NCBI GenBank assembly: GCA_965637545.1
Contig: OZ281495.1
Location: 13,516,001 to 13,580,000, forward strand
Source: Phallusia mammillata
Taxonomy: Eukaryota
Direction of reading: 5' to 3'
Length of the DNA: 64,000 nucleotides
In this document: piece by piece, positions 1,695-47,600 of the stretch
Numbering within the stretch: position 1 is the stretch's first letter
Layout: each line of letters begins with the position of its first letter
Notes under the pieces: model-generated
Databases searched by the model: none
What the model saw: the letters and a program-made list of their open reading frames with translations, nothing else
What the model was told of the DNA's origin: nothing
Program-made: the position numbers and the translations under genes

Positions 1695-4600
1695 CTTGAG
1701 AACTTCAGGCGCAAGATGTTGTATATTCCATGTAAAGTTGGTCTCATTCAAGTAAGAAGTGTTTTCGTTGAACTATCATCACTAACCAAAAAATCACCTT
1801 AAAATGCCAAAAAACGTATTTTCTTTCATCGTCGTGCTTAAGGGTATAAACGGCTCAGATTTGTTGCACTTGCATATAACACAGCCGCAAAACTAGTTAC
1901 ATGATGGCCTTACATTGTAGGCCTCAACATGCGTATATACACAAACAACCCTAGCTTTAATCCAACACGCAATTCAGCAATCTTTCACAGCAGGGTAGTA
2001 GCGTTGATGTATTGCAGTCACTTGCTGCTTTACATAGCTAATCTGTCTCTTAAACTGCTGACTGGGACCGACCCGTGTAACGGTGACATGCACATGCAGT
2101 CACACATAAGACAGCATGGATATGAGAAAGAAACTCTTGTGCTGTCAGTAGGATCATTTGATGCGGCCTGAACGGAAATTACTAAGTTCCGTTTGCCTCT
2201 GTGCGCGTCATTAACAAAATATATAAGAGTTGTGGGTTGATGTGCTATTGTTAGGTGAGATTTGCATTGATACCCAAATGCATACTGATTGTTTTTTCAA
2301 ACGAAACTGGCTGTTTGATTAGGCTATATTAAGGCATAGACTTTTTAACTTGCAGTTATATTATATCAGCTGTTGCTGCCAGGCATAATATCAACTTTAT
2401 AGTTGTAGTTCCATTGTTAGTATTTCATTATGGGACATATGTCAAAAGTCTCCCTACTATCAAAGACTCTATTTTACAAACAAACGTACAATATCAAACG
2501 CAACAATTTGATTACATTTCTTGATTACATGATTACAAAATTTTGACACAAATACAACAACTTGTTAATCCCACTTGTCACATTTTAGCCAGCAACTAAA
2601 ACTACACTTTTTATAAACTGGCTGGTTTATTTTAACGTCGAGGTCTACAAAGGATCGGAAATCCCAGGGCGGACGCAAAACAGAGGAAGCACGTTTTTTC
2701 TAAGCCTTAACCCTGTGTGACCTTTTGTTTTTACGAACTGACGTCAGTAGAAAATACTCAACAATAATCTGCCACCCTAGGTGCTAACATGGTCAGGCTA
2801 CACTTGGCAACCAAAACAAATCTGCGTTTTTATCATAGTGAATAAAGCTCGTGCTTATAAACAACACAGGAGCCGTATTGCAAGTAGATATAGCCAATTC
2901 GTTTAGTTTAAAATTACCCTCGTTTGGGGTTGCTTTTTTGTGCTGCCTCACAGCAAAAAGATTTTTGCATTTAAAACAGGCTTGTCATCCTTCACTTTCT
3001 GGAAATGCTGACTATTTCACCAAGATTGGTATACTGGTGTATCAGGCAGCTATTTCTGATGTAAACAATCAAATAAACTTCAACTCGCTTGAATCTTAAC
3101 AAAATCAAATCCTTAACTACTCAAACCTGTAAATTAACACTCGCGCAGACACTTTGCATGTTTTTCCATGCACGTCCGATCAGCAGGTACAACGTTTGAA
3201 CGTCTGGGCAAGAAAACTGTTGCCGGTGGTCGATAGAACGCCAGCTGTTGTTCCAGCGTCGGGCGGGAAAATCAATTATTCAAAGCGCGTTTCGGTGCAA
3301 AAGCGCACGAGGTGGGCCCACGAGCAGACAAGCTGACTGGGAGCTTTGGTGTGGGCGAAACGGAGCGGAATCAAGCTACATACAGATTAGAATTAGATAG
3401 ACTTATCACCGAAACACAAGTAGGCTACCTGATAACAGGAGTGCTTTCAACACTTGCCTTTTAAAGCTGTCATTCTGTTTAAAATAGTGCTTGGGCCGCT
3501 AAAGTGAACGTCGCGTATTGAAATGTAATACTTTTGTATTGTTGTACCATGTACAGTATTTGATATTTAGTGACAACTCTTCTCCATGAGTGTTCGAACA
3601 ATTTTTTTATTCAATTTGATTCCCATTTTCGCCAAATGTGAAACCTAAAAGCTGATAATTACAAATTCCGGTCATTTCGTTTGTGGTCTTGATGTGGGCC
3701 AGGTCCCTCAAAACATTCATTCAACTGGTTGGCCGCTCACATGCAGTACAACGGTGAGCTGCAGCGCGTCTACAACCCATCCACTTGCCACGTTTTTGCG
3801 CTCGATAATGTGCAATGTTGCGCAGCTATTTCCGGCTTGGTGATTGTTTTGCTGTATTTTCGTTCACCAAGAAAAATAAACTGAATCAACTTAACTCACC
3901 TCATTCCCTTAACTTATGCTCGCTCTCACAACGCCCATATTACCAAACCTTGACGCCACCATTCGGATATTTCAGTTCCATTTCTCAACGCATGGTGGCA
4001 GTACAGATACCAAAACTGTACGATGAAACGAAACTGCGTTTTTTATTCACAAAGTACAAGAGAGGAACCGTGTACCGAAACAATGGAAGCGGAACGAAAT
4101 AAGCAAAGCCCATTACAACGATTTCGGAACACATAGTGCACACAATAATACTGATCAAACAAATGTGAAATTCGTATTGGGAATGTCAGTACTTTTGTTA
4201 GTCATTTTAGTTTTATTTCGGTTGGACTTGTCGCAATGAAATACTGCGACTGGTACTTCAATTTAAGAAGCAATAGGTTTGCTCTGGATAATTGCCTACA
4301 GAAAGCATAGGCCTTAAAATGTTTTATACAACAAAACGAAGAAACAAAACATTTAGCTTTGAATCAATGGGTAATGCACAAACGGTTTTGCACAAAACAA
4401 AAATGACTTGCCAAATTACGATTTGCGTGCAGAGACTTGTTACATGTACGAAAATACAAAAATAGAAACTATTAAGTTACGAAAAACCAACTCATGCAAC
4501 TTAGCAAAGCACTAACTATGGCAGCTTAAATGTGACGCAAAAATCGCACGAAACAATGTGAAAATGCTGCAACACTGAAAAAGCATTCCAACGTATTAAC

Positions 4601-5553
4601 AGGTCATCGTGCAGTGTACATGGGCTGTTATAAGGTGTAACAGAAGAGGACAGAAGAGTTGTATGCGAGGCCACAAGCGGAAAAAAAGATATGAAGAAAA
4701 ATCTCGAACTTTCCACGGGCGAACAGGATAGGTGCAAAGCGAACTAGTGGTTATCGTATCACTGCATGGGATGAGAAACAAGGAACTTTTTACGCAAGCA
4801 ACACCGTCCGGGGTTTTGGGCCTGGCCTTGGTTTAGTTTGTATTTAAATTACTCAGTTCCACCATGTTAAATGTTCGTAATTTACCAAAATACAATCATC
4901 ATATACATCAAATGCAATACAACGTTAGATTGTAATAATCATATCCAATTTCTGACGGGTATGATTTTCATCAAACAACTGCTGTAATACAATTTAAAAC
5001 GTTTTGTATCGAATATCTATTAGGAGACTTTTCCAATACTCATTAAATGGGCATGTTAACAGTTTGAATTCTAAGTTATTGATGCCTCCATAATGTGTTA
5101 ATATGGTGTCAGTACAGAGGAATGATTAGCAAAGGCGGGGATGCATGACTACAGTACAATGCTGAACAAAACGTGGTGGGAGCAAACGGTATAAACGCCG
5201 CCAGTTTTTTTGCTTTCAAACGATTTTCTGTTACGTAATTTTGACGACGTCACACAATCAGTACACCTTGTGAAAGTTGCCATATGGGAGATATACATAT
5301 GCTGATAGGTCTTACAATTGGGTGTTAATGGATAAGCATACTTACATGTTGATTGTGTATGAGCTTACAACGCGGTCGAGAGGAGGTCACACAGAATAAA
5401 TACTCGTTACAAATACAAAAGAAGAACAAAGAAAAATGTAATCAACCATCCGTCAGCCGGCGCTGCGACTCGCGGCGAACGCACTCAAACGCACACTCCG
5501 CGCTGCGTCATAGGTCACGTGAGATGGCTTGGTAGTCTCGACGCAGTCCCGGG

Positions 5554-5699: not shown

Positions 5700-8600
5700 C
5701 TGTGTATAAGCAAGAATTGACGTTGGAACGCGCCCAGCGCGCGGCAAAGCAAATGCCAATTGAAAGTTGCATGCACAATCCACACATTGTATGTCAGGGA
5801 TTTTCAATCCAGGTTCTAGCGTCCAATTGCAAAATGTTTTTTGATTTTTTAAACAATTATGTGGACGGTTGGCACTTATGTTTATGTCAAGTAAGATGTG
5901 CGAGCGAAACGCCTACTGCTTAAAACGTACCATGTCTAAGTTCGCTATAAATTAAGAATCCCAAGGTGTCGTATACATATTGTTGGTGTTAAAACTGTAG
6001 AGAACTTGTTTTTCACATTTATGACAAAGTAGATTTAAAAGCGCAACCCAGACTAATTAGCGCAGCTAAATTAGGCAAAGCAGAAAAATTGCACACTTTA
6101 GCCATTGCTGCCCATATGAAAATATTTGTACCAAACGAATGTTGGCAAAATGTGAGCATTCAAACCGCAAAACACGGTAACCTTCAACACCACACAGCAG
6201 AAAGCATTCCAATCTCAACACACATCATACAGAATTCACAGATTGCAAATTCATCGTGACCGCAGCACACAAAAACCGCACCAACACGAGTCCGCAGGCG
6301 CAACGCGAAGCAGCTGTAATAACAACTCGTAAACGAGAAACGGGCTTATTGGATGATCTTATGCGATGAAATCAGCCTGTTATCACAACTTGCTTTTCCA
6401 GCAAATGAAAAATCTCAGCCACGGAGCCGGCATGTTTTGCTTGGCAAGCGACGAATCTTACAGTTTGTTGTTGCAGGGCTGGAAGGGCCAACCCAAGGCG
6501 ACAGGTCTTTACTTGGATAGATTTATGTACGTTGGTTATAACGAGTTATTAACGTTAGTATGCGGTTTACTTTCTTGTGTGCTTTATAACTGTTTACGAC
6601 TTCCGCGTTATGCTATATTTGATAGTTTAAAACGGTTCCCCCTGTTCGTAATCATCTTTGAACTAAACCGACGTATGAGTTAATGCAAACTTCTTTAGGC
6701 GCAGTTGATGTTTAACATAGAGTGATGTCGTTAACCAAACAAGCGTAATTTGTTGATGATATGCCACCGTAGTTTTTCGCAGGCAAGTAGTTTAACTTTT
6801 TGTACATTAAGCCCCACACATGATTCACTATTACGATTCAAATATTATCCCAAATAATGTTTTCCAAAGTAGCAATACGAGAGCATCACAAAACGCCAAA
6901 CGCTTTAATATAAGACAATGAAACAGGACAGTTTGTTGCAGCACGAGCAATTATCGTGCCTGAATGATAAGATGCAGGTCTTGCAAAGCAGCTCGTCAAG
7001 GTAATTGCCAAGAACGCGTTTCCACACTAAAGCCACCGCACTAACGTTTTGCACCCTACAATTACAACTTACCGTGAACTGAGACGCAGTTAGCGGTGTT
7101 GCATCGCTCCGAGTCACGTGGTCTCTCGTTCGCCGCACATAAGTCGCTGTAGTCGCCGTGCTCATCCAAGCATTGCACGTCACGTGACCGAGTACCGCCG
7201 TTGCACGATGCAGTGCACTGTAAGGAAACATGACGAGTCAATTTCGTCGAGAAAAGCGTCGTAATAGTCAGGTCGGACTTGAATTTCACTCTACCTTATT
7301 TACTATGCAATCGCATGCAGGTACAAATCCTGTAAATTATTATGTAACCGAGACCGCCAAATTGGTTTATTCCATAAACATAAATTTCAGGCTATTCCAA
7401 AACTTTAGGATTTAGGACGGCTTGAATACAGATCAATCTCCGACACATAAACGCAAAAAATGGTAATGTTGTAAGATTTTGTTTTCAAAAAATCATAATC
7501 ATCCAGAAATAAAGATGTTCAAAGGAACTTGATAGAGTAATCTATTTCTAAGCGTTAAGTTTCTTTCTAATTTTCTATTTTGGGGGGGAAATCTGTAATC
7601 CTATTCAACAGTTTAGGATGATTAGCTGAAATATTCAAAGCCCTGATTGAAAACATGTTCTGGTAAATTTTAGTTTAACTACCTCTGTCCATTGTGTGTG
7701 ATACCATCGTGAGCCACAGGACTGAGTGTTACAGGGTTGCTCTACATCAGGTTTCTCAGATTCGTTACACGGTAACTGTCCGTCTGTTTCTTCGGTGGAG
7801 CCCGTTGATCCGTCAGGGTTCACTCGCAGACAGACCACGCGTCTCTCCTGCACACCGGCTCCACAATTGCTTGAGCACTGCAAAAATACGATAAATTACA
7901 TAGAATAAAAAGTACTGGACTGTAAAGAAAAATAAAGGTGTTAAATGCCCGGTATTTTGATTTTGCGTTAAGCGTCTATTTTGCATACTTTTGTACATAA
8001 CAAATTTCTTGACCTATCAAAAGCAAAAAGAAGCTTTTACGATAAAATAAAGGTACAGTGTTCAAATGTAGACTTGAATTTTCAAAACAGTAAACATCAA
8101 TACCATCGCTAAATTTAAATTGGTCTCGGAACGTGCAATACACATAACTGAAATTTTCACTTCCGGGATTAGGTACCTGAGCATTGGCCAGGCCCAACGA
8201 TGGATCAAATACAGCACTTGATGTCTATACACAAAACGCACCTCGCTTTGTGTTCTGGGAAATTAGTTACAGTAAATGTTAAGGTCCATATATGGATTGG
8301 CGGTCTTTTGTTACATCCGTGCTATTCAACGCAAGAAGTGCCATCTCAAATGACGTTCACAATCACATAAATAGCATTTTACGCTTATCATTTTTTGGGG
8401 GAAACAATACTGTACTTCATCGGGTTAAGGTAGAAGCGTTTATCGTGTCTTAGATGTAGATATAGATCTAATTGCATTTGAAATATGCACAAATGGACGA
8501 CAGGTGACTTTTTTAAATCCATTTACCCCCTTCCAAGACCGGAACAAGCGTTATCTAAATTACAGGGCCGGTGGGTGCCTAATATCAAGCTTTGATCCCG

Positions 8601-11600
8601 CTAATGGCACTCAATTTACCGGACCACTGGGCCCCGCTGGTCGGCCCCACGCAGGTAAAACCGCTATCAGTGTTGCTTAGGCGGCAATTTGCACAAGCAA
8701 ATGACAATTTAAAGCGTAAAAAATAAGCCGCGTTTGATCAGATCAAGGCATTAGCTCCCTGTGCCCTTTATAGATGGTTCTGCCTCGGGGTAAAACGATT
8801 CCAGGCTCACAAATTTTGTAGATGATGTAAAGAATGTTTGCGATTCAGTTATTTATGTGTGGTATAAATTTAAAAAAAATAATCTTGGAGGCAACAACAT
8901 ACACCACAGGTATTGATCATTTTGTTGAGATGACCAAATTTGGACTTTACTGTTTCAACGTTTTGAGAAAAAAGTCTTAATTTCGCCAACATTGTCAACC
9001 AACCGTCCCATTTTGTTTTCGCTGGGGTATCTGTCGACAACAGTATAGCAAAAAGAAGCAATGTTAGCGTTTACTCCAGTTAACCGATGCAGGGACGCAC
9101 CTACATTTTTTGACGTTCCAAGAAAAGGCCAGCAAACGAGGTTTTAATGATCCGGCCAGTCGAACCAAAGATTGAAATCTCGTTTGTGTTATATTGTGAA
9201 AGCGGTTGGTTCTATCTTTAAAACCGTTGTTTTCGTCCATAACAATATCAAATGTCGGTAATGCACTCATGTTTAACGACACGTTATGTTACATGTCCAA
9301 ATATGTAACCAAACTCTTGTTTAGCTGCACTTTAAAATGAGGACTCGATATGAAACGCACAGTGTTGAAGTCAGCAAGGAACAGTTGTTGTATGCAAACC
9401 AGGCAAAAGATCAGCTTTGGATTACACGCAAATTTAAGGTTACCAGGTCAGTTACCCCTGCACTATTTCTGGACACAAGGGTGGTTTACTGTGGGCGGAA
9501 CGTCCGAAGGGATCTTAATCGTGCACAGGTCGGGTGTGTGACGTGGATCAAGATAAGCAGTTTGATTGACGTGAGCACACAAACCGACGTTTGTAGCCCT
9601 TTGATCCGATATAGGGAATTAGCCAAAAGGTGACCCCCAAAACGCAGAATTTACACTGAGGTTAAAACAACCTGATGAAGTGTTCTGAAATAGCCAAAGA
9701 GAATCTTCCTGATTTTTTACACTTGGTGTTAATGCCTAGCGGTTAGTGTAGTAATAGGATTAAAGGGATGGTGTCGGTCTGTTTTCGTGGTCAACCAGAC
9801 TTGTGTTTACACGCATTAGGAACAACCCTAAACACTCGACGAACACTGAGGCATGCGGCAGAAGCTCTGTAATTAAGATCCGTGGGATGAAGGTACAATT
9901 TGGGTCCTTAAGCGCAAGCAAACATTCTCACCATAACGAGTTAGGGCACCACACCAGAATCACGCACAGTTCTAAAGTGTCCAACATTCTTTCACGTAAC
10001 CACTCCCAGGCCAATTGTTTTACCCACTACGTCTGGTTTGTCTAACCATGATAAGTTGGGATAATTTATCAAACCGGGGTGACATTGTGTTGAGCTACTG
10101 TTCCTTTTAATTGGGCGGTGTGGTTTATTCAGCCTAATTTTAAATTTAATTTATTTGGGACTCGTTTGATAATCATTGATAAGTTTCTGGTGAGAAAGAC
10201 TAGCATGGTCGAAACGTGTTTTTAATGCAAACAAGATGTTAGCTTTAAAAAAGCCAAAACCGCAAAAAAATAAGAAAAACTCCGCAGGTCAAATCAATTT
10301 GTAATTTGTATCCTCTGTCAGAAACACGCTGTAAGTTTGCACGGGCCTACATCGTTTGAATGATTAAAAGCAAACACTCCACAACACGCACTGGTAATAG
10401 GATTCGATCAACCCCCAAAAGCAATCATTTGTTTCGAATCCTTGAAGATCTGTTTGCGATGCATTTAAACAACAAGTGGACCATGGCGCCACGTTGAAAC
10501 GAGTACTTGCTTACCCAGCCCCTATCTGAGCCTACAAGTTGTGAAAAGACCACCCCGGAAATTTTTAGACGGTTAAGGCGCTTGCGTTATTTGCTCAAGG
10601 ATTAGTTTCGGGCTCTGGAGCTTTGCTTGCAATGCCAGAACTTCAAAGTGTTGCGATAAGGATGGAGTTATAAAGTTCGGGTGGTTCACTGTGGTTTCAC
10701 GGGCAAGCGTTGTGTTTCGATTGTGTGTCCCAGTGAATCTGTACTTTAGAGGCCAATAGCTGTCCTTTGACAACACGGAATGCTAGAGACCAAACATCGT
10801 TGTCAACTTCTAACCCAAGTTCAACCCCACACAATGTTTCAAGACTCAGGATTGGTATTATGGAAATTTAAAGTAATTGCTTTATTGGTGGAATTTCAAC
10901 AGAACGTTATGAAGTAATTTATGTGTCTTGTGATCAGGAATTCGTGGAGATGACTTTGAGTAACGTTGTGCAAACATCACACATTCGATTGCGGTTAGAA
11001 AGAAGATTAATCAATACGTTGTTGAAATGCAACCCCTATCCGAACAATCTTATCAGCAAACATCGTGTTTCTCTTGTTTTCCAACAAAATCATCGTTTAG
11101 GGCCACGCCGTTCTCAAACAAGCAATTATTCATATTTGAACGTGGTTTTGGCCAGGACGGAAATCGAATTTGAAATGGGCTTGACCCGTGCGCCGCGCAT
11201 TCATCACGTAAGCTCCCCTTGACGATTGACGGGGAAAAGAGATAACGATCGCCGCGGAAAACGCGTTCCAGAGCCGGGCTTTCACAAGCTCAAAGCCACT
11301 GTTTACAGTTTGTCAGACACGATCTATCATTGATTGCAGCAGGCTCGCTTTACAAATCCTTACAACACAATGCCAGGGAAATAAATTTGAACGAAAGCAC
11401 TTGATATTTGTTCTAACAGGTTCATTGCTTGTGCTCATCAAATACCACCAAGGCTACATTAGTCACTCGTTTATTGCCACCTTGTAAGGTTTCCCAGGAA
11501 ACACAAAATGAATCTATTTACCTAATGTAAAACAAATATGAGGGTCGTTGCGCTCGCAACAAGATTTAGTTCAGAAACTACAGTTGCTAAATATGTATTT

Positions 11601-14600: not shown

Positions 14601-17600
14601 AATTTACGACCCGATACCTGCGATAAGCGAACGTGCCATTTCAGTAATCCTTGAAAGTGTATGCACAAGAATAAATGCTGTGATGGAAAAGATAGCTTCA
14701 CTATCTCATCCTGACCTGCAGGTGAACGTCGTGTTTTATGAAAGCAACTAAGGTCATGGTGAAGGTTATTTTAAAGCGTGCTGTGGCGGAAGAATCTTCT
14801 TGCTGTAAATGTGCCATGGCCCCGGTGCTTGAAAACGCCAACGCACAACTATTGTGGTTTACGTTTACGAAGTTGCTCAGACCTCGGGAAAAACAACCAG
14901 CTGAACTTGAATACGGCCTGACCATACGTAACATTCCGTAGATGGTTTAAAATACACCGCCATAAATGGTTGTGAATTTGGACCTACAGGCATTCGTGGA
15001 AAGTTTTCAAACACGACACGGCAGCAAAACTTTGCAAGCGTTTCGCAAACAAGAATTGGTGTTGAAAACCAACACACCATTGAGATTTTATTGTAAAAAC
15101 CCCAGAAACGCCTACACTGTACACACAGTAAATCATTTTTACAGCAACCATATACCCGTTCTGGTTAGGGCTTGTTCAAGTCGTTGCACCCGATGGCTTG
15201 TTCAAGTCGTTGCACCCGAACCACGGAATACAATGCAACATCTGTTCACTTCGGAAATAAACACGAAGTAGAAGGGGGCATTAAACGTTGTTGGCCTTAT
15301 CCAAAAATTTCGAGATTTACAGCTATTTATAGAACACTAGAGGTTTAAGACAAGTTGTGAAACAGCTGTTCCGTATAAACGCACTTGCGCACATTTGACG
15401 TACTAACTCTTTTCGCAACCAGGTGCTTCCCATCTTCAAAGAGCCTGAACTGACTTCTGTGTGAAGTCGGCGGTGTATGTGGGCACTCGACTCGTCGGCG
15501 GTCGTGGGTCGAGTGGGCGCAACGGTCGGGAGAATCTTCCAAAAAGGCGCCGAGGCCGGTTTACACACACAGATAGGGTAAAACAAGTAAGCCCTGTTTG
15601 TCGTGTGCTGACCGCCATCAATCTGTGTCCTTGTGGTGCTTTTGATTACAATCGGGAAGAGCGGTGGCGCCGGATATTTAGCTTAAGGACCGAGATTAAT
15701 GCCTGAATGACTCATGTGGGACTTAACCTTATTCGAATTTCCAAACAAATACCATAACATTATTCCTATGGATTGGTGTCAGGTGGAAAATGTACATATA
15801 AATGGTCCGTAGACACGATCTTTCAATAAAGGAAACAAGAAGGTAAAAAGGATCTCAAAACATTTTGTCATCTTTAACGAAATTCGGTCTTCTCACTGAA
15901 ACTCGAGGTCCTTTTTTGTGATTTTACAGCAGCTACATCTCTGGCATCTCTGGTTTGGGACTTTGACGCTTACGATCGCCGCTTTGTTTGCGCTTTCCCG
16001 TGGGTAAACACTACACCGGTCCACGACGAGTTTCAAGCATGATGGATCGCTTCTCGCCAGCGCTACGAGATCAAACAGTAGCTCCTGGACTTTGAGACAC
16101 AGTGGCATCTTTCCTTGTTTTCCGTACGTTTGTATCTGTGTAACTGATCTTATTTTGCTTGTAGGACATGACAGGAAGCACCAGTATGTGGACCAACGAT
16201 TAAGAGTTTACCATTAAGTCGTAAAACTCAACGTATCCTCATAAGGAGGTAAGAGACATTTTTGTGAGCCGAAAACAACTGCTGTTTATGGCTCATGTTG
16301 GTTTGTGTTTCAGATCATTTATAAACACATGGGTCGTCACGCAAGTGGGCCGTGTTTTAACAAACATTGCGTAGTTTAACAGTCGTTTTACGATGTTGTA
16401 GCTCGCGGTGACAAACAACCCAGAAAATGCGCAAGGGTGTAAAAGGGTTCAAGTGTCGGCTATTTTACATGAAATTTGGGCCAACTTAAACATGCCTAGC
16501 CCCAAAAAGCTAATAAACCTTACTTCTGATGATAAACTGTAACAATGCATGTCAGTGTGGTCATATATTGAGGAAGTGGTATCTTCCTGCTAAGGGTCTT
16601 GTTTTATCTCCAAGGTTCAACTACAACACAAAGCAAATTTGCCTCCCCCTGTCCAACAATCCTTCAGGATTTGCTCAAGAGCGTTTGGCAGCGATAAAGC
16701 GCAACCAACTGGCGTTGCCAAAACGATAAACTCCCCTCTTGAAACAAAGGTCCAACAAACCGGGCTGTCGGACGCGTCCGGAGAGCTCAAGATAAGCTGG
16801 ATCGACGGAAACGGACTCAATTTGTCACTCCGTCGTTCTTTGTCCCCGGTATCGGGGCTGGAAGCGGGAGGATCAGCGGGGATTCGACTACACAAGTGGG
16901 TATTAAACGACTGCCGGTCTGCGAGCCAATGTCAAGTGCAATTAGGGCGATAGCGGGATCCATGGGAACCACTCGTTGTGACTCCCTGCACTCCATACAG
17001 ACCGATATTGACTCGTGGCAAAACCGTTGGCGGCGCCACCCAGACAATGCATTTTTGCTTTTATATCTAAAGGTGGCCGCAAATCGGAAGCCTTTCAATG
17101 GACTGCGGGATTGGTTTGTGTTTAAAAGAAATATCCGCACTTGTGCTGGTTACACGAAACGATTTTAATTCAACCGCTAAGTTAAATTTCATTTTTCGTG
17201 TACAGGGTTGTTAAAGGACAAAAACTGAGTTTAAAATTGACATTAAAGTTGTAGACGTTGACAGAAATGAGGTTTTCGCCTTTGACAAAACTAGTGCATC
17301 ACACAAACAACTGCCACAGATTTGGAATATTCGCTAAAGCTTTACGTTACATAATCAAGTTAACGATACTTACCAATACTTCTAACGGTTCGTTGGTAGG
17401 TCCATCGCCGATCAGTGACTCTCCTTTGTCGCTATTGAACGGACGGTCATAGGTGAAGGTCGTGCCAGCAATAAGATACCTCTTGGATGGATCAGGTCGA
17501 CCCTGGTTCACTTCGGCGTTGACGTACATCGTTTTCCCGGGATTGGCTGAGCGCAGGGCTGAAAAATAAGTTGTAAGATCGGTTGGTGTTGATATTTCCA

Positions 17601-20600
17601 GTTGAGTTTTTTTAGTGCAAAGTGATAGCTAGGGCAGTGTTTTAAAATGAGTGAAAAACGTGCATTTTTGAGTATTTGGGAATTAGGCGAACGGAGAAAT
17701 GCCGATTTCCAAACGCACTGAGAATGGCCATTTTGTTTTCGTGATCATGTTTGCCCATAATAATCTTGTGCTGAGCGACGCAGCAAACAATACTGACATT
17801 TGGCTAGTTACACTCGCTAGGGCCGCAAAATATAACAAGACTAAAACTAAGTAATGTGTACATATTCATGTCGGCCTTCGTTCAGCACAAGAAAAACAAC
17901 GCTAAAACTTGAAACAGAAGTATACAAACGTTGAAGGAAATTAGTTTTTGCGGATTACGGGCGCGAGGGCTTCAAAGCTCATTTGGTTTAAGGTGCTTTT
18001 CGGTGACTTAACATCTTCTGAAGATTAACAGGGTCGCCGAGGTTTGAGAATATGATGGATGGACTTGTCGAAACATCAGTTAAAAACTCTGCCGAATCAG
18101 TTTGTTTTTGCGTTTGCTTTGTAAAATTGCGAACAAACGAAGCGTTATCAGGGAAACCTTCAAGACATTTAGTTGTAATAAAGTATTTTAAGAAATATTT
18201 TAAACGAGTAATGATATTAGGCAAAGACAATTTTTCGCACCCTATGCCTAAAGCAAAGTTTAGCAAGAAAACAAAGTAGCAGATTTTATTCAGCGAAAAA
18301 ACAAAAAACAAGTATTTTGTATTCCAGTAAAGTGATGACACAGAAGTAAATCTATGTGTATACCACTGTACACCGGTAAAATATATCATGTATCACTTGC
18401 AATGGGCAAATCCAATCATTGTTAAACGGGAGCCGTCTGAGGCCGCCACAAATACGGAAACCTACTTGTGGGGTGCCGCAGTAAGCTGAAGGTTAAAACG
18501 CCCATCAAAACCCACGAAATGATGATCAAGGCAACTAATGTGGTCCTGCGAGCAGTCAGGTGTGACAAAGCGCCCTGTTATTAACTGCTTGGGGCAACAA
18601 GCGTGCATAAGCTTCTATTATATTTAAAAAATCTGCTTAAAAAATGTAAATTGAACGCTTGTCTGTTTCCTGTCGGCAAGCGCTTAACGGTATTTGAAAG
18701 CAATACATTGATCCTTATTAGAGCTCTTTCAAGGCAAAAAGCAATTAGGATGGGCGGTCGATCGTACAAACTACAAGACAACCACAGAGAAAAGATATAA
18801 ATCTCCTGTGTAATTTACGCCGCTTCTCAACAGACCGGCGGCATTTTCCAGATTCTGCAACAGAAAGGGGAATGATTTGAAGCCAATGTTGGGAAATCGA
18901 CCACAAGGTCATTACCAGGGGTATTGTTTTTCAAATGGATGAGTGTTGGTATGACACACCACGATGGCATTCTGTTGTGGTTGGGGATTTGTCAGAGTAA
19001 TTTTCCAAATAGGAGCGATATTCTGTTTCACAGTGTTACGAATTTTATGTCTGTTTTCGCGTGGCTGTGGTTTAACGCACCTCATTAGTTTTGGTCAAGT
19101 TTTTGCAACCAAAACTTTTCAACTCGCCGTCTATATTTTGTTTGGTAATACGACTTTAAACAGCGTTCTAGTAAACAGGGGAAAGCGATCTGTGAAGTTC
19201 GACTTTTTGAACCACGAAACAATAGAGTTACATACAATTCCCTGGACTCAAATAACAAACAGCCCGACTGCCACTTGCAAAGAACTTTGCGGTTGACAGA
19301 ACGACGAATTGCCGTAACGCTTCTGTGTACTGAAGAGCCTGTGAAACAAGAGGCGTGAGTTCCAAGAAGCTGGGGTTGTGTGGTTTTGTGCCCCTTCAAT
19401 CCAAGTGAGTGAGAACCGATTGCTCGAGTATGGGCACAAACCGCGACATCGGCCCTCGATCGGGTTGTGACGGCCTGCGGTTGGAGTGATGGATGATTCC
19501 TGACTGGCTACCAACATTCCGGCTGTCGGAAAAGTGCATGTATGTGTACGTAAGCCTGTTTTGGCGGGATTTCGGTACCTGGTTTGCGTCTGTCGACGGA
19601 CACGCGTACGGCCTAATTGACGACCCGGTTTCTTGTCCGTCTTGGATGTGTGTTGATGTACAAGACATGGACTTGTGTGGATGTTGAACGTGATAAAAGG
19701 CACGTTAGGATGTTGTTTTCCTTCAGTGGATTAGCAATAATCACAGCGACCGGTAGTTGGAAAAACATAAGTGATTCATAGATATTGGTGTTTGTTTGAA
19801 AGGATGTTGACAAAATACTTGAGCTCATGCATTCCGTGAATAAGTAGACAAAAAGTCCTTTCAAATGCATTATTTGTTGTTTTTGAAAGTTGTTAATGTA
19901 GATAGTTGTTGACCATAGTTTTTTGATATTAAAAGTCAACTTGGATATATCTGAACCCACCCAGAGAACCAAGTGTGCATTGATGATGCTGGCAACAGTA
20001 AAACGTCTACAATAGTATGTATTGCGTCCATACAATTTTATTGGGAGTATTGTTTTTTAATGAGGAACCAATCAAAACTTTAATTCTGTTGGGAAAAAGT
20101 CCACTTTTAAAGAATCCAACTTTGCAACAAAATGTTTAAGTCAATCTGTGTAAAATTGGATACATTCCAGCAAATTGGCGAAAGCTCCAAGACACGGTTT
20201 TCCGGTGTGGCCTTAAGAAGTTTACCGATGAGCCGTGCAGTGTATGGGGTATGGCTCATTTACAGAGGTATCGTTGGTGCGCCAAAATTAGGGTGGGAGC
20301 ATCTAGGGAATCCGCCGTTAAGCCGATTACGCCTTTTCTGTCAGAATGTGTCAAGTGATTGGACCCCACATAAGATACCAGTTTTGGTGGCGTGGTTGAT
20401 TGCCCATAATTAAAATCATAAGTCCTACTTCTACATAATGTTAGTTAAAATAACACCTCCCTACACAGCAAAACGCACATATGTAATTCAATTTAAAAAC
20501 GCATTTAAACCTGTTACATTATATAACGTTACAAAATGACCTCAAATAAGTGGCTTGTATTTGCTATAAGCCCAAACAACTCCATGGTTTGCTATATTTG

Positions 20601-23600
20601 ACTTAAATAAGGGAACAACTGAAAGCACGGTCACGTTTGGGGCAGGCCGCACCTCTAACGAATCAACAGGTAGACACGTTTTTAAATTCACACAAAAGAC
20701 TAGGAAAACTTTGTGTGCTATTCGGAGAAGGAAGAACGTTTTTCGGTTAACCTAATTTGTGTTCAAAATTGCGTAGGCGGTCGGTAGTGTTGTTTAGCAT
20801 CAAATTTGCTAGGTACACACAACAAGAAAAGGATATGAACTGCTGCAGCGCGCAAAGAGAGCTAGGTTGTATATTCAACGAAGGCGCGGTGGCATTTGAT
20901 GGCTAGGCGATAAGTCGGGTTAATCCACGCTGCGTTTTACGGAATTGCGGACTTCTTTGAGGTGGAAATGTCAAAGTTCTTCATTCTCCGTAGGGAATAT
21001 GACTGCATTAGCGTTATCGTGTGCTGGTTTTGTTGCTGGACAAACGCAAAAGCTGATAAAAATCCGGATAGGAAGGTGAAGGCAACCACGCAAAGCCTAC
21101 TTAAACTAAAGAGGTCGAATACTCTTGGATCGAGTTAAATTCTTGTTTAGTTTCGGGTTTAGGAAACAAAACTTCAGATAAGAAAAAAAAACTACTTAAC
21201 AAGTGAGTAATGTGTTTGCACACTTAAAAGTTCAAAACCGCGAAAAGAACTACAATCATCCTCTTTAAACCCACTCAGTTGAAACAATTTACGTCGGAAT
21301 ATAGGAAACCTTTACCAAAAGTAAGAGCGATCGACTTTCAATTAAGAATGATCATTCGCAGCAACAGTCGCCTGTCAAAGCAACAGCATCCCTTTATGTC
21401 TCCTGAGATCGTTGTTAATCTCAAACACTCTCTGATCTCTCGGCAACAACAGCCAGCACGTACAACTAGCTCTAGAAGTATCCACTTTGGGCAAAAGTCC
21501 AAGACATCTCTCATCATTACAGAAGGCCACCGCTTGCCAGGGATTAGAGGAAGCACTCCATCTAAGCTTCCGCGCATTCAGCGACACGGAATTTCGACCC
21601 TCAAGGGTCCCGTTGTCAAGGCAACGTGAACACGTGATCGGGCTTTGGGTTAGTTAAGATGCGGTAATGAGTCAGGTTCGCAATTTGGGATTTGGAGAAT
21701 AAAAAAACACATTTTCTTAACGTGATATTTGTTTGTTTTTTTACATGTAACGTAACCTTAATTTTTTGTGGGTTTTACCAAAATATATTCGTAATTTTAC
21801 ATTGCAGTATTAAACGATTTAACGAAAATTATTTTTTTGCTGACATATTTTTTACGATTTAACTAAAATTATTTTTTGCTGGTAGTACCAAACCGAAGCT
21901 AAACATTTAGATACCTATTCAATTGAAATGTGATCAAAAATATGTGAATATTGTGGCATGTTTTTGTTGTTTATTACATCGCAAATTTTCTCTTACAAGT
22001 TTTTTGAATGTGATTTGTTGTATATTTTATTTGAAAAAGTGGTTTAAAAAATAACATGTCAAAACTTAAATGCCCCGACATTTTAACAGCTTTATTGCGC
22101 CAACAGATCTGCTCGGTTTGTTTGTCCCAACTAGGCTTGTATAGGTGCGACGCCGCAAACAGGTTATGGGTGTGGGTCCGGGTTCGGTCGAATGTTGAAA
22201 TCTTCTGTCACTTGTGGCAACCCTATTTTATAACAATTTATGGGACTTGGGATCACTTGCGAAGAAAAAAATCGCTGCAAGTTTGGATTAAGTTGTACCG
22301 CAGATTATCACGTTGTCAAATATGAGCCGGGGTATTATGTGGATGAGAGAGTCTGTTATTTAATGGAATTTCAGATTGTCTGTGTTTGTATATAATGGAA
22401 TTCCGATTTTGCGCATGAAACTTATGCGTTACTGGTAAAAGGTTGGGAATGTTCACTAAACGGACAGAACTTTGTTTTTCTAAGGCCTGTTAGAAACAAG
22501 AAACATGACATCATATGGAGTTTCCCTTGCGATTTTTACATTAAATCAATGTGTAAGATTTTATCTCCGTAAAACACGTACAAAAAAAACGCGAAAACGA
22601 CACAAAGTCACGAAAGAAATTGCTCAAAATTGGAAAAAGACGGCGCCAAGATTACAATTTACAAATTTAAGTATTGTGTTCGGAATTTGTCAATCGGTTT
22701 TGTGGTGCAACTGCTATAAACAAGCACAAGATTGATACTTTGTGGAGTTGCTACTCTATAATTTGACATCGCTGTAATCATCGACAATTTGCATTGTCCT
22801 TATACGACCGGACATTAAACTTGAGCGACACTTGAAGTAAATGTCGAAAACGTAAATATTCGTAAAACCCGAGGACTGTATTAGCATCTTCCACATATAT
22901 TTGTCATACAAGATTTTGCAAATTGAGAGCACAGGAACAATTTTAACACGTATCTAAAATATTATTACAAAACAAGCTCCAACTGAAATCTGTTTAAATT
23001 TGTATTCTTACCTAGATAACTTGGACTTCTCCCTTCCTCTGTAATGTGAATAAACTTTGCTCCAGCTGGAATCACTTTAACCAGATGAAAACCGTTGGTA
23101 GCAGGTTGGAAGCGATAATGTCCTGAAAATTTGCACAAAGACAATAATGAACAAATCACCACAAACTACAAAATACAATACCAAATGGTGCTAAACTATT
23201 GATTTAAAAATTTGTGGAATAAATGTAACCGCTCGCACATGAAAATGTATCCTTACCGTCACGGTAACTGCATGAAGCTCCTTTGCCCCCACATTCACCA
23301 CATTTGTCCACTTTCATTCCTGATGCGATTTGTCCATCACATCCCACAACCTAAAACAAAAATTGCTTTTAAACTGTGTTCAAAAGCCTAATTTAAAATT
23401 AGCGAGTTCTTTTTACTTAATTTAGACGACCTGCAAATAAAAAGTAAATTTTCACTGTGCAAATTTATATTTTGTTTTTTTATGAACTTGTTAAGGCAGT
23501 GGTTATCAACTGGTAGTCAATGGTTTTTTTGTGGTCTACAGGTTGTCCACTACATTTGATGATCAACTAAATAAGCGTTGGACATTCTCGTAATACATTT

Positions 23601-32600: not shown

Positions 32601-35600
32601 AACACAGCCAGTAAATGGACTGCATCTGACGGTCGCGAAACGGTTGAATTTCAACAAACTGTTGTGTTGGGGCAACTGAAAGATTCCTGATGGACAGGTG
32701 TACAGTATCAGATACTGTGTGTTAAACAATTTCGTCAAAGTTGTCCCAAAGTTTTAGAAATTGCGTTTGATTTTCATTTGATTAAACCAAAAAGATACAA
32801 AAAGGCCTTGCAAGACACTTTACTATTTCGTCAGGTTAAATGCAGCGCTTGTTTCGATGCCCAGAGTTTTATAAACAACTTCAAAAATCGATCGTTATTT
32901 TGTGTTGAAACATGTCCCTATATTTTAATAGTGCTTTTCTGTGGAAATTTTAGCATTCATCCTAGGCAAAATTGACTGGTTAAAGACATACAAACGGCCT
33001 TCGCAGAGCAGTCAGCACAAATTCACGAAAGCTCGATTAATATATCTCACACAATTATTACCTTTCAATCAAGTACCGTACGTATTCTGACGGTGGCTTA
33101 ACGTCACCAACCCCTGACATTTTAAACAATTGTGCAACGCTAAATACATTTGCCATGAAAACCGCATGTCGCTGAACAAGGGTTAAAACCTGAAAGTTAA
33201 CATTGACAAAGTCGGCGGCAGAAAACCGCTGAATTCCGTGAACGATTAACAGAAACCGCACGCTATTGTTTTGCGCTTAACTGGCTCAACAGGGGTCACC
33301 TTCTACTTCACAAAAACACAATATTTTACCCTTTAAAATAATTTGCGACCTTTTCACCCCTCGGTATATATGCATAAGGTGTCTTGTAATACCAAGGGGT
33401 CAAATTTGGGTTAAGTAAACCTAATTAACACAGGGCAATGACTTGCACTTGCTCCTGACAATGACGCTGCAAGTACGAAGCAAACGAAATTGAACTAGTT
33501 CCGTATAAGTAGTGACGGAGACGAGGGTTTACCCCTATTGACCTAACTGGGGTCCTGTTTGGCGACCCGGGGCGCGATATTGATACAATGTAGACTTGTA
33601 ATCCTTAAATGTGTTTATTAAAGGTCAGGGTTGCGCAAGGTTTCATTAATCTCCCTTTAACTGAAAAAAAAACGTTCAGATTAAACATTCGGCAACACGC
33701 GGAGTTAAAATTTCATGAGAAAACCATCCAGTTGTTTATTCATCACAAACCTTATGCTATTACAACACAAAAGGAATAACTTTTTTCAACATTTTATTGC
33801 CCTATACTTCTGTGAAGTTACGCAAATGTGCTGTTGCACTGCGATTCCGACTAAAATTTAACTTGCTAAACCAACTGTAAAGCGGTTGGCCTGCAAACTG
33901 AAGTGGGCACATCCCAGGGTAATTGTGTTCACAGTGGAGAGGCTTGGCGTTTTGTCTAGCAACATTGGCGAGTGCCAAATAATCCGATTTCGGGTACCAA
34001 ACTCCACCGAGCCGAAACGGAATGGCACCAGTGAGCTCTGGTACCAATGCTTAGTCACTTTTGGGGTTCGCAAAAACCAACGCTCAAGTAATCGCATGGT
34101 TTGCATGTGAGGGTTAGGTGTATCAGCCGTGTAGGTAAACCACAAGCCATGACCCGCAGTAACAGCACACAACTGAAGAAAACCACATAAGAGAACCCAA
34201 GTCGGGTAATGAAGCTACTTGGCTAAAAGGACTTCTAAGGCAATGGAACTTTCACCTGGTACGAAATGTGCACCTACTTCACGGTGGGTGTGGGAAAGTG
34301 TGCGACAATAAACACGACACCACGACGATGCTCGAGAGACTAAACAGCAACAGTTGCAATTACAAGAGCCTGAAAGAATTTGACACATAAAACTGTTTCA
34401 ACGCTTTGCTTTTAACCACAGAAATGTCTTAGTGTTTTTACTGTCACTGCAGAAAACGTTGAAGATTCTACTCACTGCTAGTGAGATCCCTATTTAGTGA
34501 GAAGATGCAAAAAGTACACTTGAAAGAATTATGGCTTGCTGAAGTATTACCTCCACCCACACTTAGTAAAAGCTCATCCTCCAATAGGTAATAAATAATT
34601 GTTTACACTCGTGTAACCAAAGACGAGCACTACTGATAAAAAATAACTTAAAAAGTTAAATAACTCGAAATTTCCAAACTCAATACCATAAGTAAAACTT
34701 GATTCGCAACAAATTAAGTTGGTGTGTAAAACTACTCAGTTGAGACAAAACTCTATCATGAAACACACTTACCGGAGGATCGAGGACTTCAATGTCATTG
34801 GCGAAAGAGCATGACTGCTGGAGAAGCAGAAGAACCACGGGAAACCACTTCATAATTTAACACCACACACTTACAAGAAAAAAATTACTGAACAGTTTTT
34901 CTTTTTATCAAACCTATCTATTCATTTACGAGAGAGTACTTCAATACATAAACCTTCAAAAATAAACTTTATTTTTAAACGAAAATCCAAAATTCCGAAC
35001 AGCATTTGTATTGTTGACTATATAACTTAGATAACACATTTTGCCGCAAAATTGCTGGTTGTCATGTAAATCACAACAAGCGCCCGCTTCCTATGAATTT
35101 AAATTCAACCACAGGACCACATACGTCGCTGTCCCACTAATTACACCTTATCTGACGTCAACGTGTCCGAGGCCAGAGCGCTTGCTTGCAACTTGATATC
35201 GCAGTTGAAAACAAATGTGATCCTACTAATATAACTAGCAACTATAGTCACAGCCTTATGCATTTGCCTTACTACTTCGTGCTTGCCTTTCTGTAAGCCG
35301 CAAGTAAATAAGCGGACATGCAGAGACACAATGTGGGCAGTATTTTAAATCGCGTGCTTATCGAAATCCCAAAACAGCGCCCCAAATTGCTACCTTGATC
35401 GGAGGGGATGACTGAATAACAACCGACACGGTCTCGTTTTTTACGGTTTATTGGGAAGCAAGGTGAGCCGTAATTTAGGCCAGGTGCGGTTTCAGTGTCG
35501 CTGTGAATGTCGAAAATAACCAAGGTGATATTTTTTTGCGACTGGGAAGTAGCACAGGTGCGGTATGCACGTAAACTGGGCAAAATTGACTTCAACTCCA

Positions 35601-44600: not shown

Positions 44601-47600
44601 TATCCCCTGTCTTATAAAATGTACAGCCGCAATTACATGGAAAACAAGAAAGGCCTGTAATTATACTTATGTTTGCCGACTACTAAAGTAGAAACTGGTA
44701 GGCTACGAACACAAATAGGTCCTCTCGTGCCACCTTGCGGACAAAATATGTAGTTTTGTTCACTCGAATCAATTCCACTGAAAGTCTTTTTCAAGTCAAA
44801 CACTTTTTACATAATTGTAGTGTCGTTGTTTTTTTAAAGTTACCTAATTACTGGGTCAAATTGTGAAATAAATAACCAAAAAAAAACAGGTAAAAACTTA
44901 CCGGTTTATAAATGAACCTTTCTACAGGAAGTTTTCTTACTACTGGGGTCCAGTTTCCGTTTAGAAATGATTTGTCAGGATGCAAAAAGTTGTTGATCGA
45001 CTCCAGTCTATACCCGGTGCACAAAGATGTTGCAAACAACACAAGAACCAAGACTTTGACTGCCATGACTGTTCGTAGTCAATATTTCAAATGTTATCAA
45101 TGTTTCAGTACTGTTACAAAATCCACATTCAGTAACGTCTGTAGATTGAAAGCGGTCGTTAAACTTTGACTTTAATGAAGTAGCCCATTTGGAAAATCAG
45201 TGGGTTTAGTAACAAGACAATGCTGAACAACCTTGAAAATCTCTATTGCGTTAACTGTTTTTTTTTAATTTTACCTTAGTAACAATTCTGATTTACAACT
45301 CTTGGTTTAGGTCAGTGTTCACTTCTTGCCTAACTTTCCTAAACATGGAAATACGGTTACCGCTACTTGCGAAGTCAAAAAGGACAATTCAGTTTTGCAT
45401 ATAAATGTATTTTTGTCAGTTCTTCGTGCGCACAGAACTACAGCTGTTGCCACAATAAACAAAAGTAGATTTAAGTAGAAGAGAAAATGCCAGACTGTGC
45501 GTAAGCTGACCAACTGAACAAATATGAACAAAACGGCGAAAATGTAAATCGACAAATCAACAACTTTATCAAAAGTTCCGCCCAAACTGTTCGGAACAGT
45601 CGAAACCACCAATTCACTTTTTGTAACTTTTGTCTAATCTACTAACAACTCTAAGCTGATGTTCTCAGAATTTGGAAAATCAACACAAAATTGTATATCC
45701 TGTTGCAAACTATCTTAACAAGAACGTTAAAGGCCAATTAAACATAAGTGAAAGTGTTACCCAATACATACAAATTCTTGAAGTTTCAAAAGTATGCTCT
45801 AAACATCTATTTAGGCCAGGCCATGTTCTTTAACTGACAAACCAAAATATGTGATGCTGGTGACATATATGGATACTATGTTGTACCAAACTTACGTACA
45901 TGGGCTAAGTAAAGTTCATTGATAACCGCACCTAGGCATCCAACGTTTTTACAAGCAAACTTCTAAGCCAACGCAACGAAATCCGATATCGTATAATCCA
46001 GATATCCATTCTATCTACTGGCGTTTGTCACGCAATGCAACCGTACATATAGCACTCACACTCTCCCTATGAAACCCTAACCAAAGCCAATTGCTAAAGC
46101 TTCGAAATCCCGAAAAGCACTCTTACAGACCAAGCTCAATACACAGAAGAAAAATAGTAAGCAAGCAACATAATTAGGGCTTGAAAATAAAAAAAGGTTT
46201 TACTTATCTATTCACTACACGGCTAGCAGCGTACGGGGTTCTTAAATACCTCGAAACTTCCTTATCGTACAACTCAATCTTGCCCTCTCGGTATACACTA
46301 CGATCATGAAGTTGTAAACAGGTTCCCGGGACTAATAGGCGGAAGCACACAAGCAGGCATGTTTGAAAAGTTGCTTAAAACCATGTACGGAATGACGTCA
46401 CCGCCAAAACAGGTACGGTCGTGCGCTCAAAGTGGCTTGCTGTGTTCGACAAGGAGAAGGCGGGATCAACTTGTTAGGGGACAAGCTTTTGGCGTGATTA
46501 ATCCCAGACAAACAAAGCTTATAGTAGAAGAGTTACTGAGGCCGCTCTGTGTTTGCGAAGGAATTACCTGGGCGAAGAAAAAACGTCGAAGACGTAACCC
46601 ATGTGGTCAGGCCTCATTGAACGCGCGCGCCCACCAGAAATCGCTACTTTATAACTGTAAACATGTCTGTTGAAATAATAATTAAGCAAAAATGTGTTGC
46701 CTTTTTTGCAGACAGATAAGGTCTTAGGGAAAAACAAACGGTACATGGAAAAAACAATACCCAGTAAAAGAAACAAATGTTTTGTATGAAGATACTGGCT
46801 TGTATTTTTGCTAGGACTAGAAAACGTGTATTATATAGCTAGACGCGGATTTACAGCCAAGCTGAAATGCGAGTAAAACATTTTTACCAAATACTTTTCT
46901 GGAGGTCAAAAATTTTACGATTGTTGACATTACATAACCACTCATCATCAGTTTTTCTCGATTTTTACGTTCTTGTTGACGAGTCGCATTCCAGTCCATT
47001 CAGGCAATAAAAAGCGAAAATCGTAATACAAACGAAGTCCTCCCAAATCAGGCATCCTGAAAAACAATCGTTGAAGTGGGCACGAGCGGACCAGCTGACC
47101 GCATACTATAGCTATTGTTCGAACACGGAACAATCAACGCAAGTGTGAGGTCACCATCGGAAGTTATTATTCGCGCATCGTGGACACAAAGCACCGTTTA
47201 TGACGTAACAATCGAAAATCGCAGCCTCGGACCACAGGCTGAGCGTGTTTTCCAAAAGTTTATATGACCCGAAGGTCATGAATAAGGCCCTTAAGAACAA
47301 AGTCTCTGCCCGTGAATGTGATCCTAATATAAACCCGAGTAACAGCTGTGTTCGGTTTAATAGTTCGTGGATTGAGAGAGTAATCTTTCCGGGACTGAAT
47401 GTCACCATCTTTACGATTCGAATGATTTGCCAAACAAGGGTTAAACGACTCTTGATTCGAGAAGTTCAGGCACACTAAAAATGCGATGTGCACGTGTATT
47501 GACCAACAAGCTAGATCCCAATTTATCAGTTTTGAGAAACTAACGACAATAATTTCATATAGTGTAGGAACTTATTTTGTCGGACACAAAATTCAGGACC

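Follow-up and report, generated by a model that had tools for sequence, protein, structure and literature searches.

A gene of the THSD4/ADAMTSL6-like type lies in the stretch of Phallusia mammillata DNA analyzed here (contig OZ281495.1 of assembly GCA_965637545.1, forward-strand positions 13,516,001 to 13,580,000), the whole 64,000 nucleotides of which are called the window. Positions below are counted from the first nucleotide of the window, and all features of the gene are on its minus strand. Between the CA and CB exons, in an intron of 30.5 kb, sits an exon at 45066-44902, called the medium exon, which is very probably a genuine alternative first coding exon of this gene and one of its three 5' starts.

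The host gene has the full modular layout of its family. Pfam searches of the minus-strand open reading frames (ORFs) place TSP_1 at 55111-54950, ADAMTS_CR_3 at 54051-53806, ADAMTS_spacer1 in two parts (23165-22968 and 17628-17350), a series of TSP1_ADAMTS repeats, and PLAC at 5793-5557; on the exons, TSR1, the cysteine-rich module, the spacer, the C-terminal TSR array, and PLAC are all present. The first coding exon of the long form, at 55480-55388, encodes a signal peptide beginning MEGNFVLMLAWILGLIMCISAQ and is spliced in phase 0 to the TSR1 exon at 55081-54951, with no propeptide, metalloprotease, or disintegrin-like domain between them. The orthologues likewise have a signal peptide directly before TSR1. 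Since TSR1 follows immediately on the signal peptide, the host protein is ADAMTS-like and not a protease, and on its domain sequence the gene is assigned to the ADAMTS-like proteins, in the THSD4/ADAMTSL4 group. The spacer exon was searched against representatives of protein clusters, and its Ciona savignyi match then served as the query of a word search that returned tunicate proteins under the names "THSD4-like" or "ADAMTS-like 4". Among them, the 458-residue partial Phallusia mammillata "THSD4-like" entry UniRef A0A6F9DU47 (P0021), matches the 3' exons of the window at 97-100%. In the TSR exon 7877-7683, this public entry and the window disagree at a single residue (ERPVVC versus ERRVVC), and the entry begins at an internal Met (13586), so that it represents a 3' fragment of the host gene.

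The exons restricted to the long form, which encode TSR1 and CA (55081-54951, 54658-54592, 54332-54230, and 53975-53818), are placed by the Pfam TSP_1 and ADAMTS_CR_3 matches, by tblastn with the Ciona isoform X2 (P0018), and by splice sites and frame. The CB exon at 23350-23257 begins VVGCDG, and is called the GCD exon; its phase-0 acceptor is common to all three N-termini. The shared exons from spacer to PLAC follow at 23122-23012, 17558-17374, 13826-13370, 13106-12980, 12920-12713, 12441-12271, 11976-11809, 7877-7683, 7217-7073, and 5699-5554 (stop included), as placed by Pfam, the match to A0A6F9DU47, and frame. The models of all three isoforms are open and have AG/GT at each junction, with 852 residues for the long form, 723 for the medium form, and 695 for the short form. 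These joined isoforms were built only for length and stop count; the Phallusia exons were searched singly, with related database proteins taking the place of the spliced Phallusia product in searches and folding. The host gene is expressed and spliced as modeled in the exons that an RNA contig covers. Over 17365-23360, run X3 yields one 499-nucleotide spliced contig that joins 23103-23012 to 17558-17372 with GT..AG ends on the gene strand and whose loose end runs into the 13826 exon, confirming the joints 23012/17558 and 17374/13826.

The medium exon begins with an ATG at 45066-45064 in the context acaGtcATGg, with G at both -3 and +4. An in-frame TGA at 45081-45079 (-15) lies five codons 5' of this ATG, and the stop-to-stop ORF begins LRTVM. 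From 45066 onward the DNA reads acagtcATGgca..., and its 55 codons encode MAVKVLVLVLFATSLCTGYRLESINNFLHPDKSFLNGNWTPVVRKLPVERFIYKP, a peptide that starts with MAVKVLVLVLFATSLCTG and ends with FIYKP. A signal-like hydrophobic start is followed by 37 residues, of which the last 17 (WTPVVRKLPVERFIYKP, encoded at 44952-44902) are the motif discussed below. The putative signal peptide has the core VLVLVLFATSL, with a mean Kyte-Doolittle value of 3.1 and small residues C-T-G at -3/-1 by crude rules. After ...AAACCG and the final exon base 44902 comes a GTAAGT splice donor (44901-44896), in phase 0 as is the GCD-exon acceptor at 23350. The predicted junction of 44902 with 23350 reads ...TATAAACCG followed by GTTGTGGGA, and the medium exon with the shared exons is open over 723 residues (55 + 668), or over 738 if a proposed 45-nucleotide microexon is included. 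A preliminary description of this DNA had reported the ATG context, the upstream stop, the signal-like start with 37 further residues, the gtaagt phase-0 donor that fits the 23350 exon, and both sums of residues; the sequence reads as described, and the sums are right.

The strongest evidence for the medium exon comes from Ciona. RefSeq cluster members for Ciona intestinalis include isoforms X1 to X4, of 870, 854, 769, and 703 residues. X3 (XP_078484407.1, P0068, and the older XP_018667347.1, P0074) has a unique start of 95 residues, the last of which are ...DKWIPVVEELPVERFIYNP, with KIGCDG coming next, just as the Phallusia medium exon ends NWTPVVRKLPVERFIYKP and the next exon opens VVGCDG. 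The Ciona X3 N-terminus is one exon (L018, 10356-10640) in a 17-kb intron that extends from the last CA exon (end 5395) to the GCD exon (22406). When the Phallusia exon is searched by tblastn against the 42-kb Ciona locus, the top match is the end of the X3 exon (E = 2e-6), and the reverse search against the 64-kb window returns 44952-44902 as its top match (E = 1.7e-5). The medium exon is thus placed as the reciprocal best match of Ciona X3 exon 1, and its peptide is single-copy across the Phallusia assembly, which comprises eight chromosome-size contigs and 240 Mb. The motif is identical to Ciona WIPVVEELPVERFIYNP at 13 of 17 residues, and different codons are used for 7 of these 13, whereas the first 51 nucleotides of the adjoining intron are 43% identical between the two genera. 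The conserved residues, the changed codons, and the diverged intron flank together indicate that constraint acts on the protein. Ciona X3 shares with the Phallusia exon its place as a single first exon in the CA-GCD intron upstream of the short exon, a putative signal peptide of its own, the pattern W-x-PVV-xx-LPVERFIY-x-P followed by GTAAGT at the same motif position, and, in the models, a direct joint to the GCD exon. It differs in having 95 codons rather than 55, in aligning over the last 17 residues alone, and in being an unstudied automatic prediction. A comparison of P0068 with P0074 finds the motif identical at 17/18 positions, the remaining unique part at 65/77, and the common part at 661/674.

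A more distant counterpart is found in Clavelina lepadiformis, for which the RefSeq isoforms X1 to X3 have 846, 738, and 677 residues and the locus was located through X1, the longest product of the gene. Clavelina X2 (XP_076803784.1, P0019) starts with a single medium-type exon of 88 codons (L019, 8503-8766) in the same intron, upstream of the short exon and joined to the GCD exon. A MAFFT alignment retains the W, PV, PVE, and final P columns of the motif, which is otherwise interrupted and extended in this species (GWKPVTDFRKQFPNLFPVKDENNFW...), and BLAST detects no similarity between the medium exon and this counterpart. The order long, medium, short, GCD is common to the three ascidian genera: 55480-53818, 45066-44902, 34853-34773, and 23350 in Phallusia; 3001-5395, 10356-10640, 14883-14969 (X4), and 22406 in Ciona; and 3001-4697, 8503-8766, 17112-17189, and 25982 in Clavelina. 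In Styela clava, whose annotated gene has the short form only and a first intron of about 370 nucleotides, the 10 kb upstream of the short-form gene contain no medium-type, TSR1/CA, or other long-form exons; the long form may have been lost, or may be encoded at a greater distance. Two word searches found nothing comparable. The 76-residue ORF around the exon gave no candidate with three common 5-residue words among proteins of 42-133 residues, a range outside which the full-length isoforms fall. Ciona X3 residues 1-97 scored with nothing, their own isoform included; this is uninformative on absence, as the isoforms are clustered under the long form. The preliminary description had proposed an alternative first coding exon of the ADAMTSL gene, and this proposal is supported by the position of the exon in the CA-CB intron and by a Ciona X3 orthologue that is modeled straight to the GCD exon. 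The same description took the N-terminal peptide to be novel, which it is not: Ciona conserves it, and the RefSeq predictions for Ciona and Clavelina already include it.

An ATG, a run of hydrophobic codons, and a GT can also come together by chance in an intron and have no function. A crude scan for ATG ORFs with a signal-like start and an internal GTRAG donor finds three on the gene strand of the window (at 55480, 45066, and 34853), each in phase 0; the opposite strand of the window has no such ORF. Over 320,000 strand-bases elsewhere in the genome, the scan finds eight, four of them in phase 0; one of these four has GTAAGT and looks like a real exon. Such ORFs accordingly occur about once per 40 kb of strand in the Phallusia genome, and no RNA coverage of the medium exon was found, both of which suit a chance origin. 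The two GTAAGT phase-0 ORFs within the 30.5-kb intron nevertheless amount to about 20 times the background rate, an excess that is suggestive of more than chance and not decisive. Conservation already contradicts a chance ORF: the Ciona match is significant in both directions and falls at the corresponding position, and codons have changed synonymously beneath kept residues; exon order is alike in three genera; the donor falls at the same motif position in Phallusia and Ciona; and a single-copy peptide argues against a repeat origin. Chance is therefore an extremely improbable source of this exon.

The third start lies further downstream in the same intron. The preliminary description had placed a microexon at 34817, which is equal to the last 45 nucleotides of a 27-codon exon at 34853-34773 that encodes MKWFPVVLLLLQQSCSFANDIEVLDPP, begins with an in-frame ATG 36 nucleotides upstream at 34853, and ends in phase 0 at a GTAAGT donor. 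Annotated short-form first exons of similar size and design exist in Ciona (X4, 29 residues), Clavelina (X3, 26 residues), and Styela clava (30 residues), and proteins of amphioxus and grass carp, together with two tunicate proteins derived from transcripts, start in a similar way. The Phallusia short-exon tail resembles the Styela short-form tail FDIDVIDLK. Short-type first exons aligned from ten species have no sequence conservation, so their homology rests on position and design. In Ciona X3, the first exon is joined to the GCD exon without an intervening microexon. Judged by sequence and position, 34853-34773 appears better read as a third first exon than as a microexon; the proposed microexon is more simply the 3' part of a signal-peptide exon with the position and design of Ciona X4, Clavelina X3, and the Styela start. 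Use of the internal CAG acceptor of 34853-34773 as a cassette is conceivable, with nothing seen in its support.

The medium exon might instead be the first exon of a separate nested gene, or an exon retired in Phallusia though kept in Ciona. The splice partner of 44902 is not observed in Phallusia, and the Phallusia exon, at 55 codons, is shorter than its counterparts in Ciona (95) and Clavelina (88). Yet its ORF, ATG context, signal-like start, GTAAGT donor, and motif are intact, its phase suits the GCD exon, and the counterpart exon is connected to the GCD exon in the RefSeq models of two further genera. A nested gene is further disfavored by the ORF list, in which no other domain-like minus-strand ORF appears between 44902 and 34853. 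Both versions are unlikely when set against an alternative start of the host gene.

Several observations weigh against the alternative-start interpretation and the role proposed for its motif. Twelve runs guessed to be RNA contain next to none of the medium-exon words in their Logan contigs, and two probable DNA runs contain them. The sole RNA contig on the gene stops at 23103, which is 154 nucleotides short of the GCD exon, and is silent on the 5' exons. The putative signal peptide of the medium exon is called by a hydrophobicity rule and a -3/-1 cleavage rule. No alignment between genera is possible for the exon beyond its last 17 residues, and the isoforms of Ciona and Clavelina were predicted automatically by RefSeq. 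Finally, AlphaFold2 gives the unique Ciona X3 N-terminus, motif included, a predicted local distance difference test score (pLDDT) below 50, with no fold or docking in support of a role. What is observed directly in favor of the exon is its anatomy, its orthology, the shared exon order, and constraint at the protein level; its transcription in Phallusia is presumed from these.

In the proposed mechanism, any one transcript of the gene would use just one of three 5' coding starts, all of which encode a signal peptide of their own and close in phase 0. The medium and short exons would be spliced straight to the GCD exon at 23350, and the long form would reach the same acceptor from the last CA exon. 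Each start is predicted to direct secretion, and the medium and short starts would yield secreted proteins without TSR1 and CA that retain CB, the spacer, six TSRs, and PLAC. The medium start would add a variable stretch that ends in the W-x-P-V-V-x-x-L-P-V-E-R-F-I-Y-x-P motif, immediately N-terminal to CB.

The medium exon would presumably have a promoter of its own. A different origin for its 5' end is spliced-leader (SL) trans-splicing just upstream of the ATG, which could form the medium (and short) 5' ends on a pre-mRNA from the upstream promoter with no need for an internal one. In ascidians, a large share of mRNAs is trans-spliced. An AG lies 2 nucleotides before the medium ATG (gaacag followed by tcATG), with further AGs at -46 and -79, and the long-form ATG at 55480 comes directly after a strong acceptor (ttttgcgtttgcag followed by ATG). 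On the other hand, the tract ahead of the AG at -2 contains few pyrimidines. The long (848-residue) and short (690-residue) mRNAs of another tunicate are represented by full-length transcript contigs (JGI, Logan) with different 5' untranslated regions (UTRs), that of the short-form contigs being 126-130 nucleotides, and the two forms have no common spliced leader at their 5' ends. These differing 5' UTRs fit separate start sites, and vertebrate THSD4 employs an alternate promoter (PMC8559271). Trans-splicing is a rather unlikely competitor to the proposed internal promoter. The acceptor-like site ttttgcgtttgcag that abuts the long-form ATG spans 55495-55481, and Ciona and Clavelina have similar sites 17-27 nucleotides before their long ATGs. 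Such sites could reflect SL trans-splicing or a non-coding upstream exon.

The most likely role for the motif, at the level of a guess, is that of a short linear binding element; it may instead act as a short packing element. AlphaFold2 modeling of Ciona X3 residues 1-250, with an alignment of 28 rows, gives CB and the spacer a pLDDT of 85-95. Docking of the motif as a strand on CB or the spacer is unsupported by this model, in which three informative rows are too few to refute it. A broader proposal is that ascidians possess a third N-terminal module, not known in vertebrates, that presents a functional binding or targeting motif before CB and the spacer, and that the long/short two-start design itself dates to the chordate ancestor. 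Taken as a whole, this is a tentative possibility.

The long/short design itself has clear parallels. Human THSD4 has two transcript variants, the second of which uses an alternate promoter and start codon to encode an isoform of 658 residues whose N-terminus is distinct (PMC8559271). The first description of the alpha and beta forms of ADAMTSL6 dates from 2010 (Tsutsui et al., cited in PMC10850197), and beta binds the N-terminus of fibrillin-1 (PMC10850197). The preliminary description had drawn this parallel correctly. Mammalian ADAMTSL6 beta (THSD4 isoform 2, NP_001273358.1) resembles the Phallusia forms in its family, its alternate start codon, its distinct N-terminus, and its loss of the N-terminal TSR1 and CA part with retention of the spacer, TSRs, and PLAC; its use of an alternate promoter would match the internal promoter proposed for Phallusia. 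It differs from the medium form in that vertebrate beta has a short-type N-terminus, in which the signal peptide is followed by a few residues, as in the Phallusia 34853 exon. Among the few vertebrate THSD4 N-termini compared, no counterpart of the medium exon or motif was found; both are seen in ascidians only. A paper found on Ciona ADAMTSL does not discuss isoforms (PMC1867822).

Short forms joined at the same exon extend this comparison beyond mammals. In fish, the common sequence begins just before GCD, and grass carp X2 starts with MMLSAVAPLLLVCLQMRVLGKPWSQSA followed directly by GCDD. Amphioxus short isoforms (for example XP_019623783.1 and CAH1252619.1) have a signal-peptide exon joined two residues before GCD (...AQEVL followed by RVGCDG), as in the ascidian gene; unlike ascidians, amphioxus has the short kind alone annotated besides the long form. 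In some of the amphioxus long forms, 14 extra residues, EKRPWGRNSPYFYF, stand exactly where CA meets GCD. This insert (P0092 versus P0026) is a true cassette at this intron in another chordate, and its kinship to the ascidian motif is unproven. Because annotation records short forms with this joint in amphioxus, in tunicates, and in fish, which represent all three chordate subphyla, the annotated sequences favor a long/short design that is ancestral to chordates over one that evolved twice. The preliminary description had left both origins of a two-promoter design open; the ancestral one gains from these short forms, and independent evolution loses. Its suggestion of an undescribed system does not hold, as annotations of relatives already predict the same isoform and a known design is extended.

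In mammals, the THSD4/ADAMTSL6 alpha/beta design is important to the assembly of fibrillin microfibrils and to aortic disease. The results presented here suggest that the long/short THSD4 design is not a vertebrate invention and that ascidians add to it a medium N-terminus with a protein-constrained motif. For annotation, the Phallusia gene gains two unannotated first exons, and one proposed microexon is corrected. If the motif is functional as proposed, it would give the medium isoform a partner or matrix location unlike those of the long and short forms. With one gene of this group found in Phallusia, the animal may offer a simple chordate model for telling apart what the individual isoforms do.

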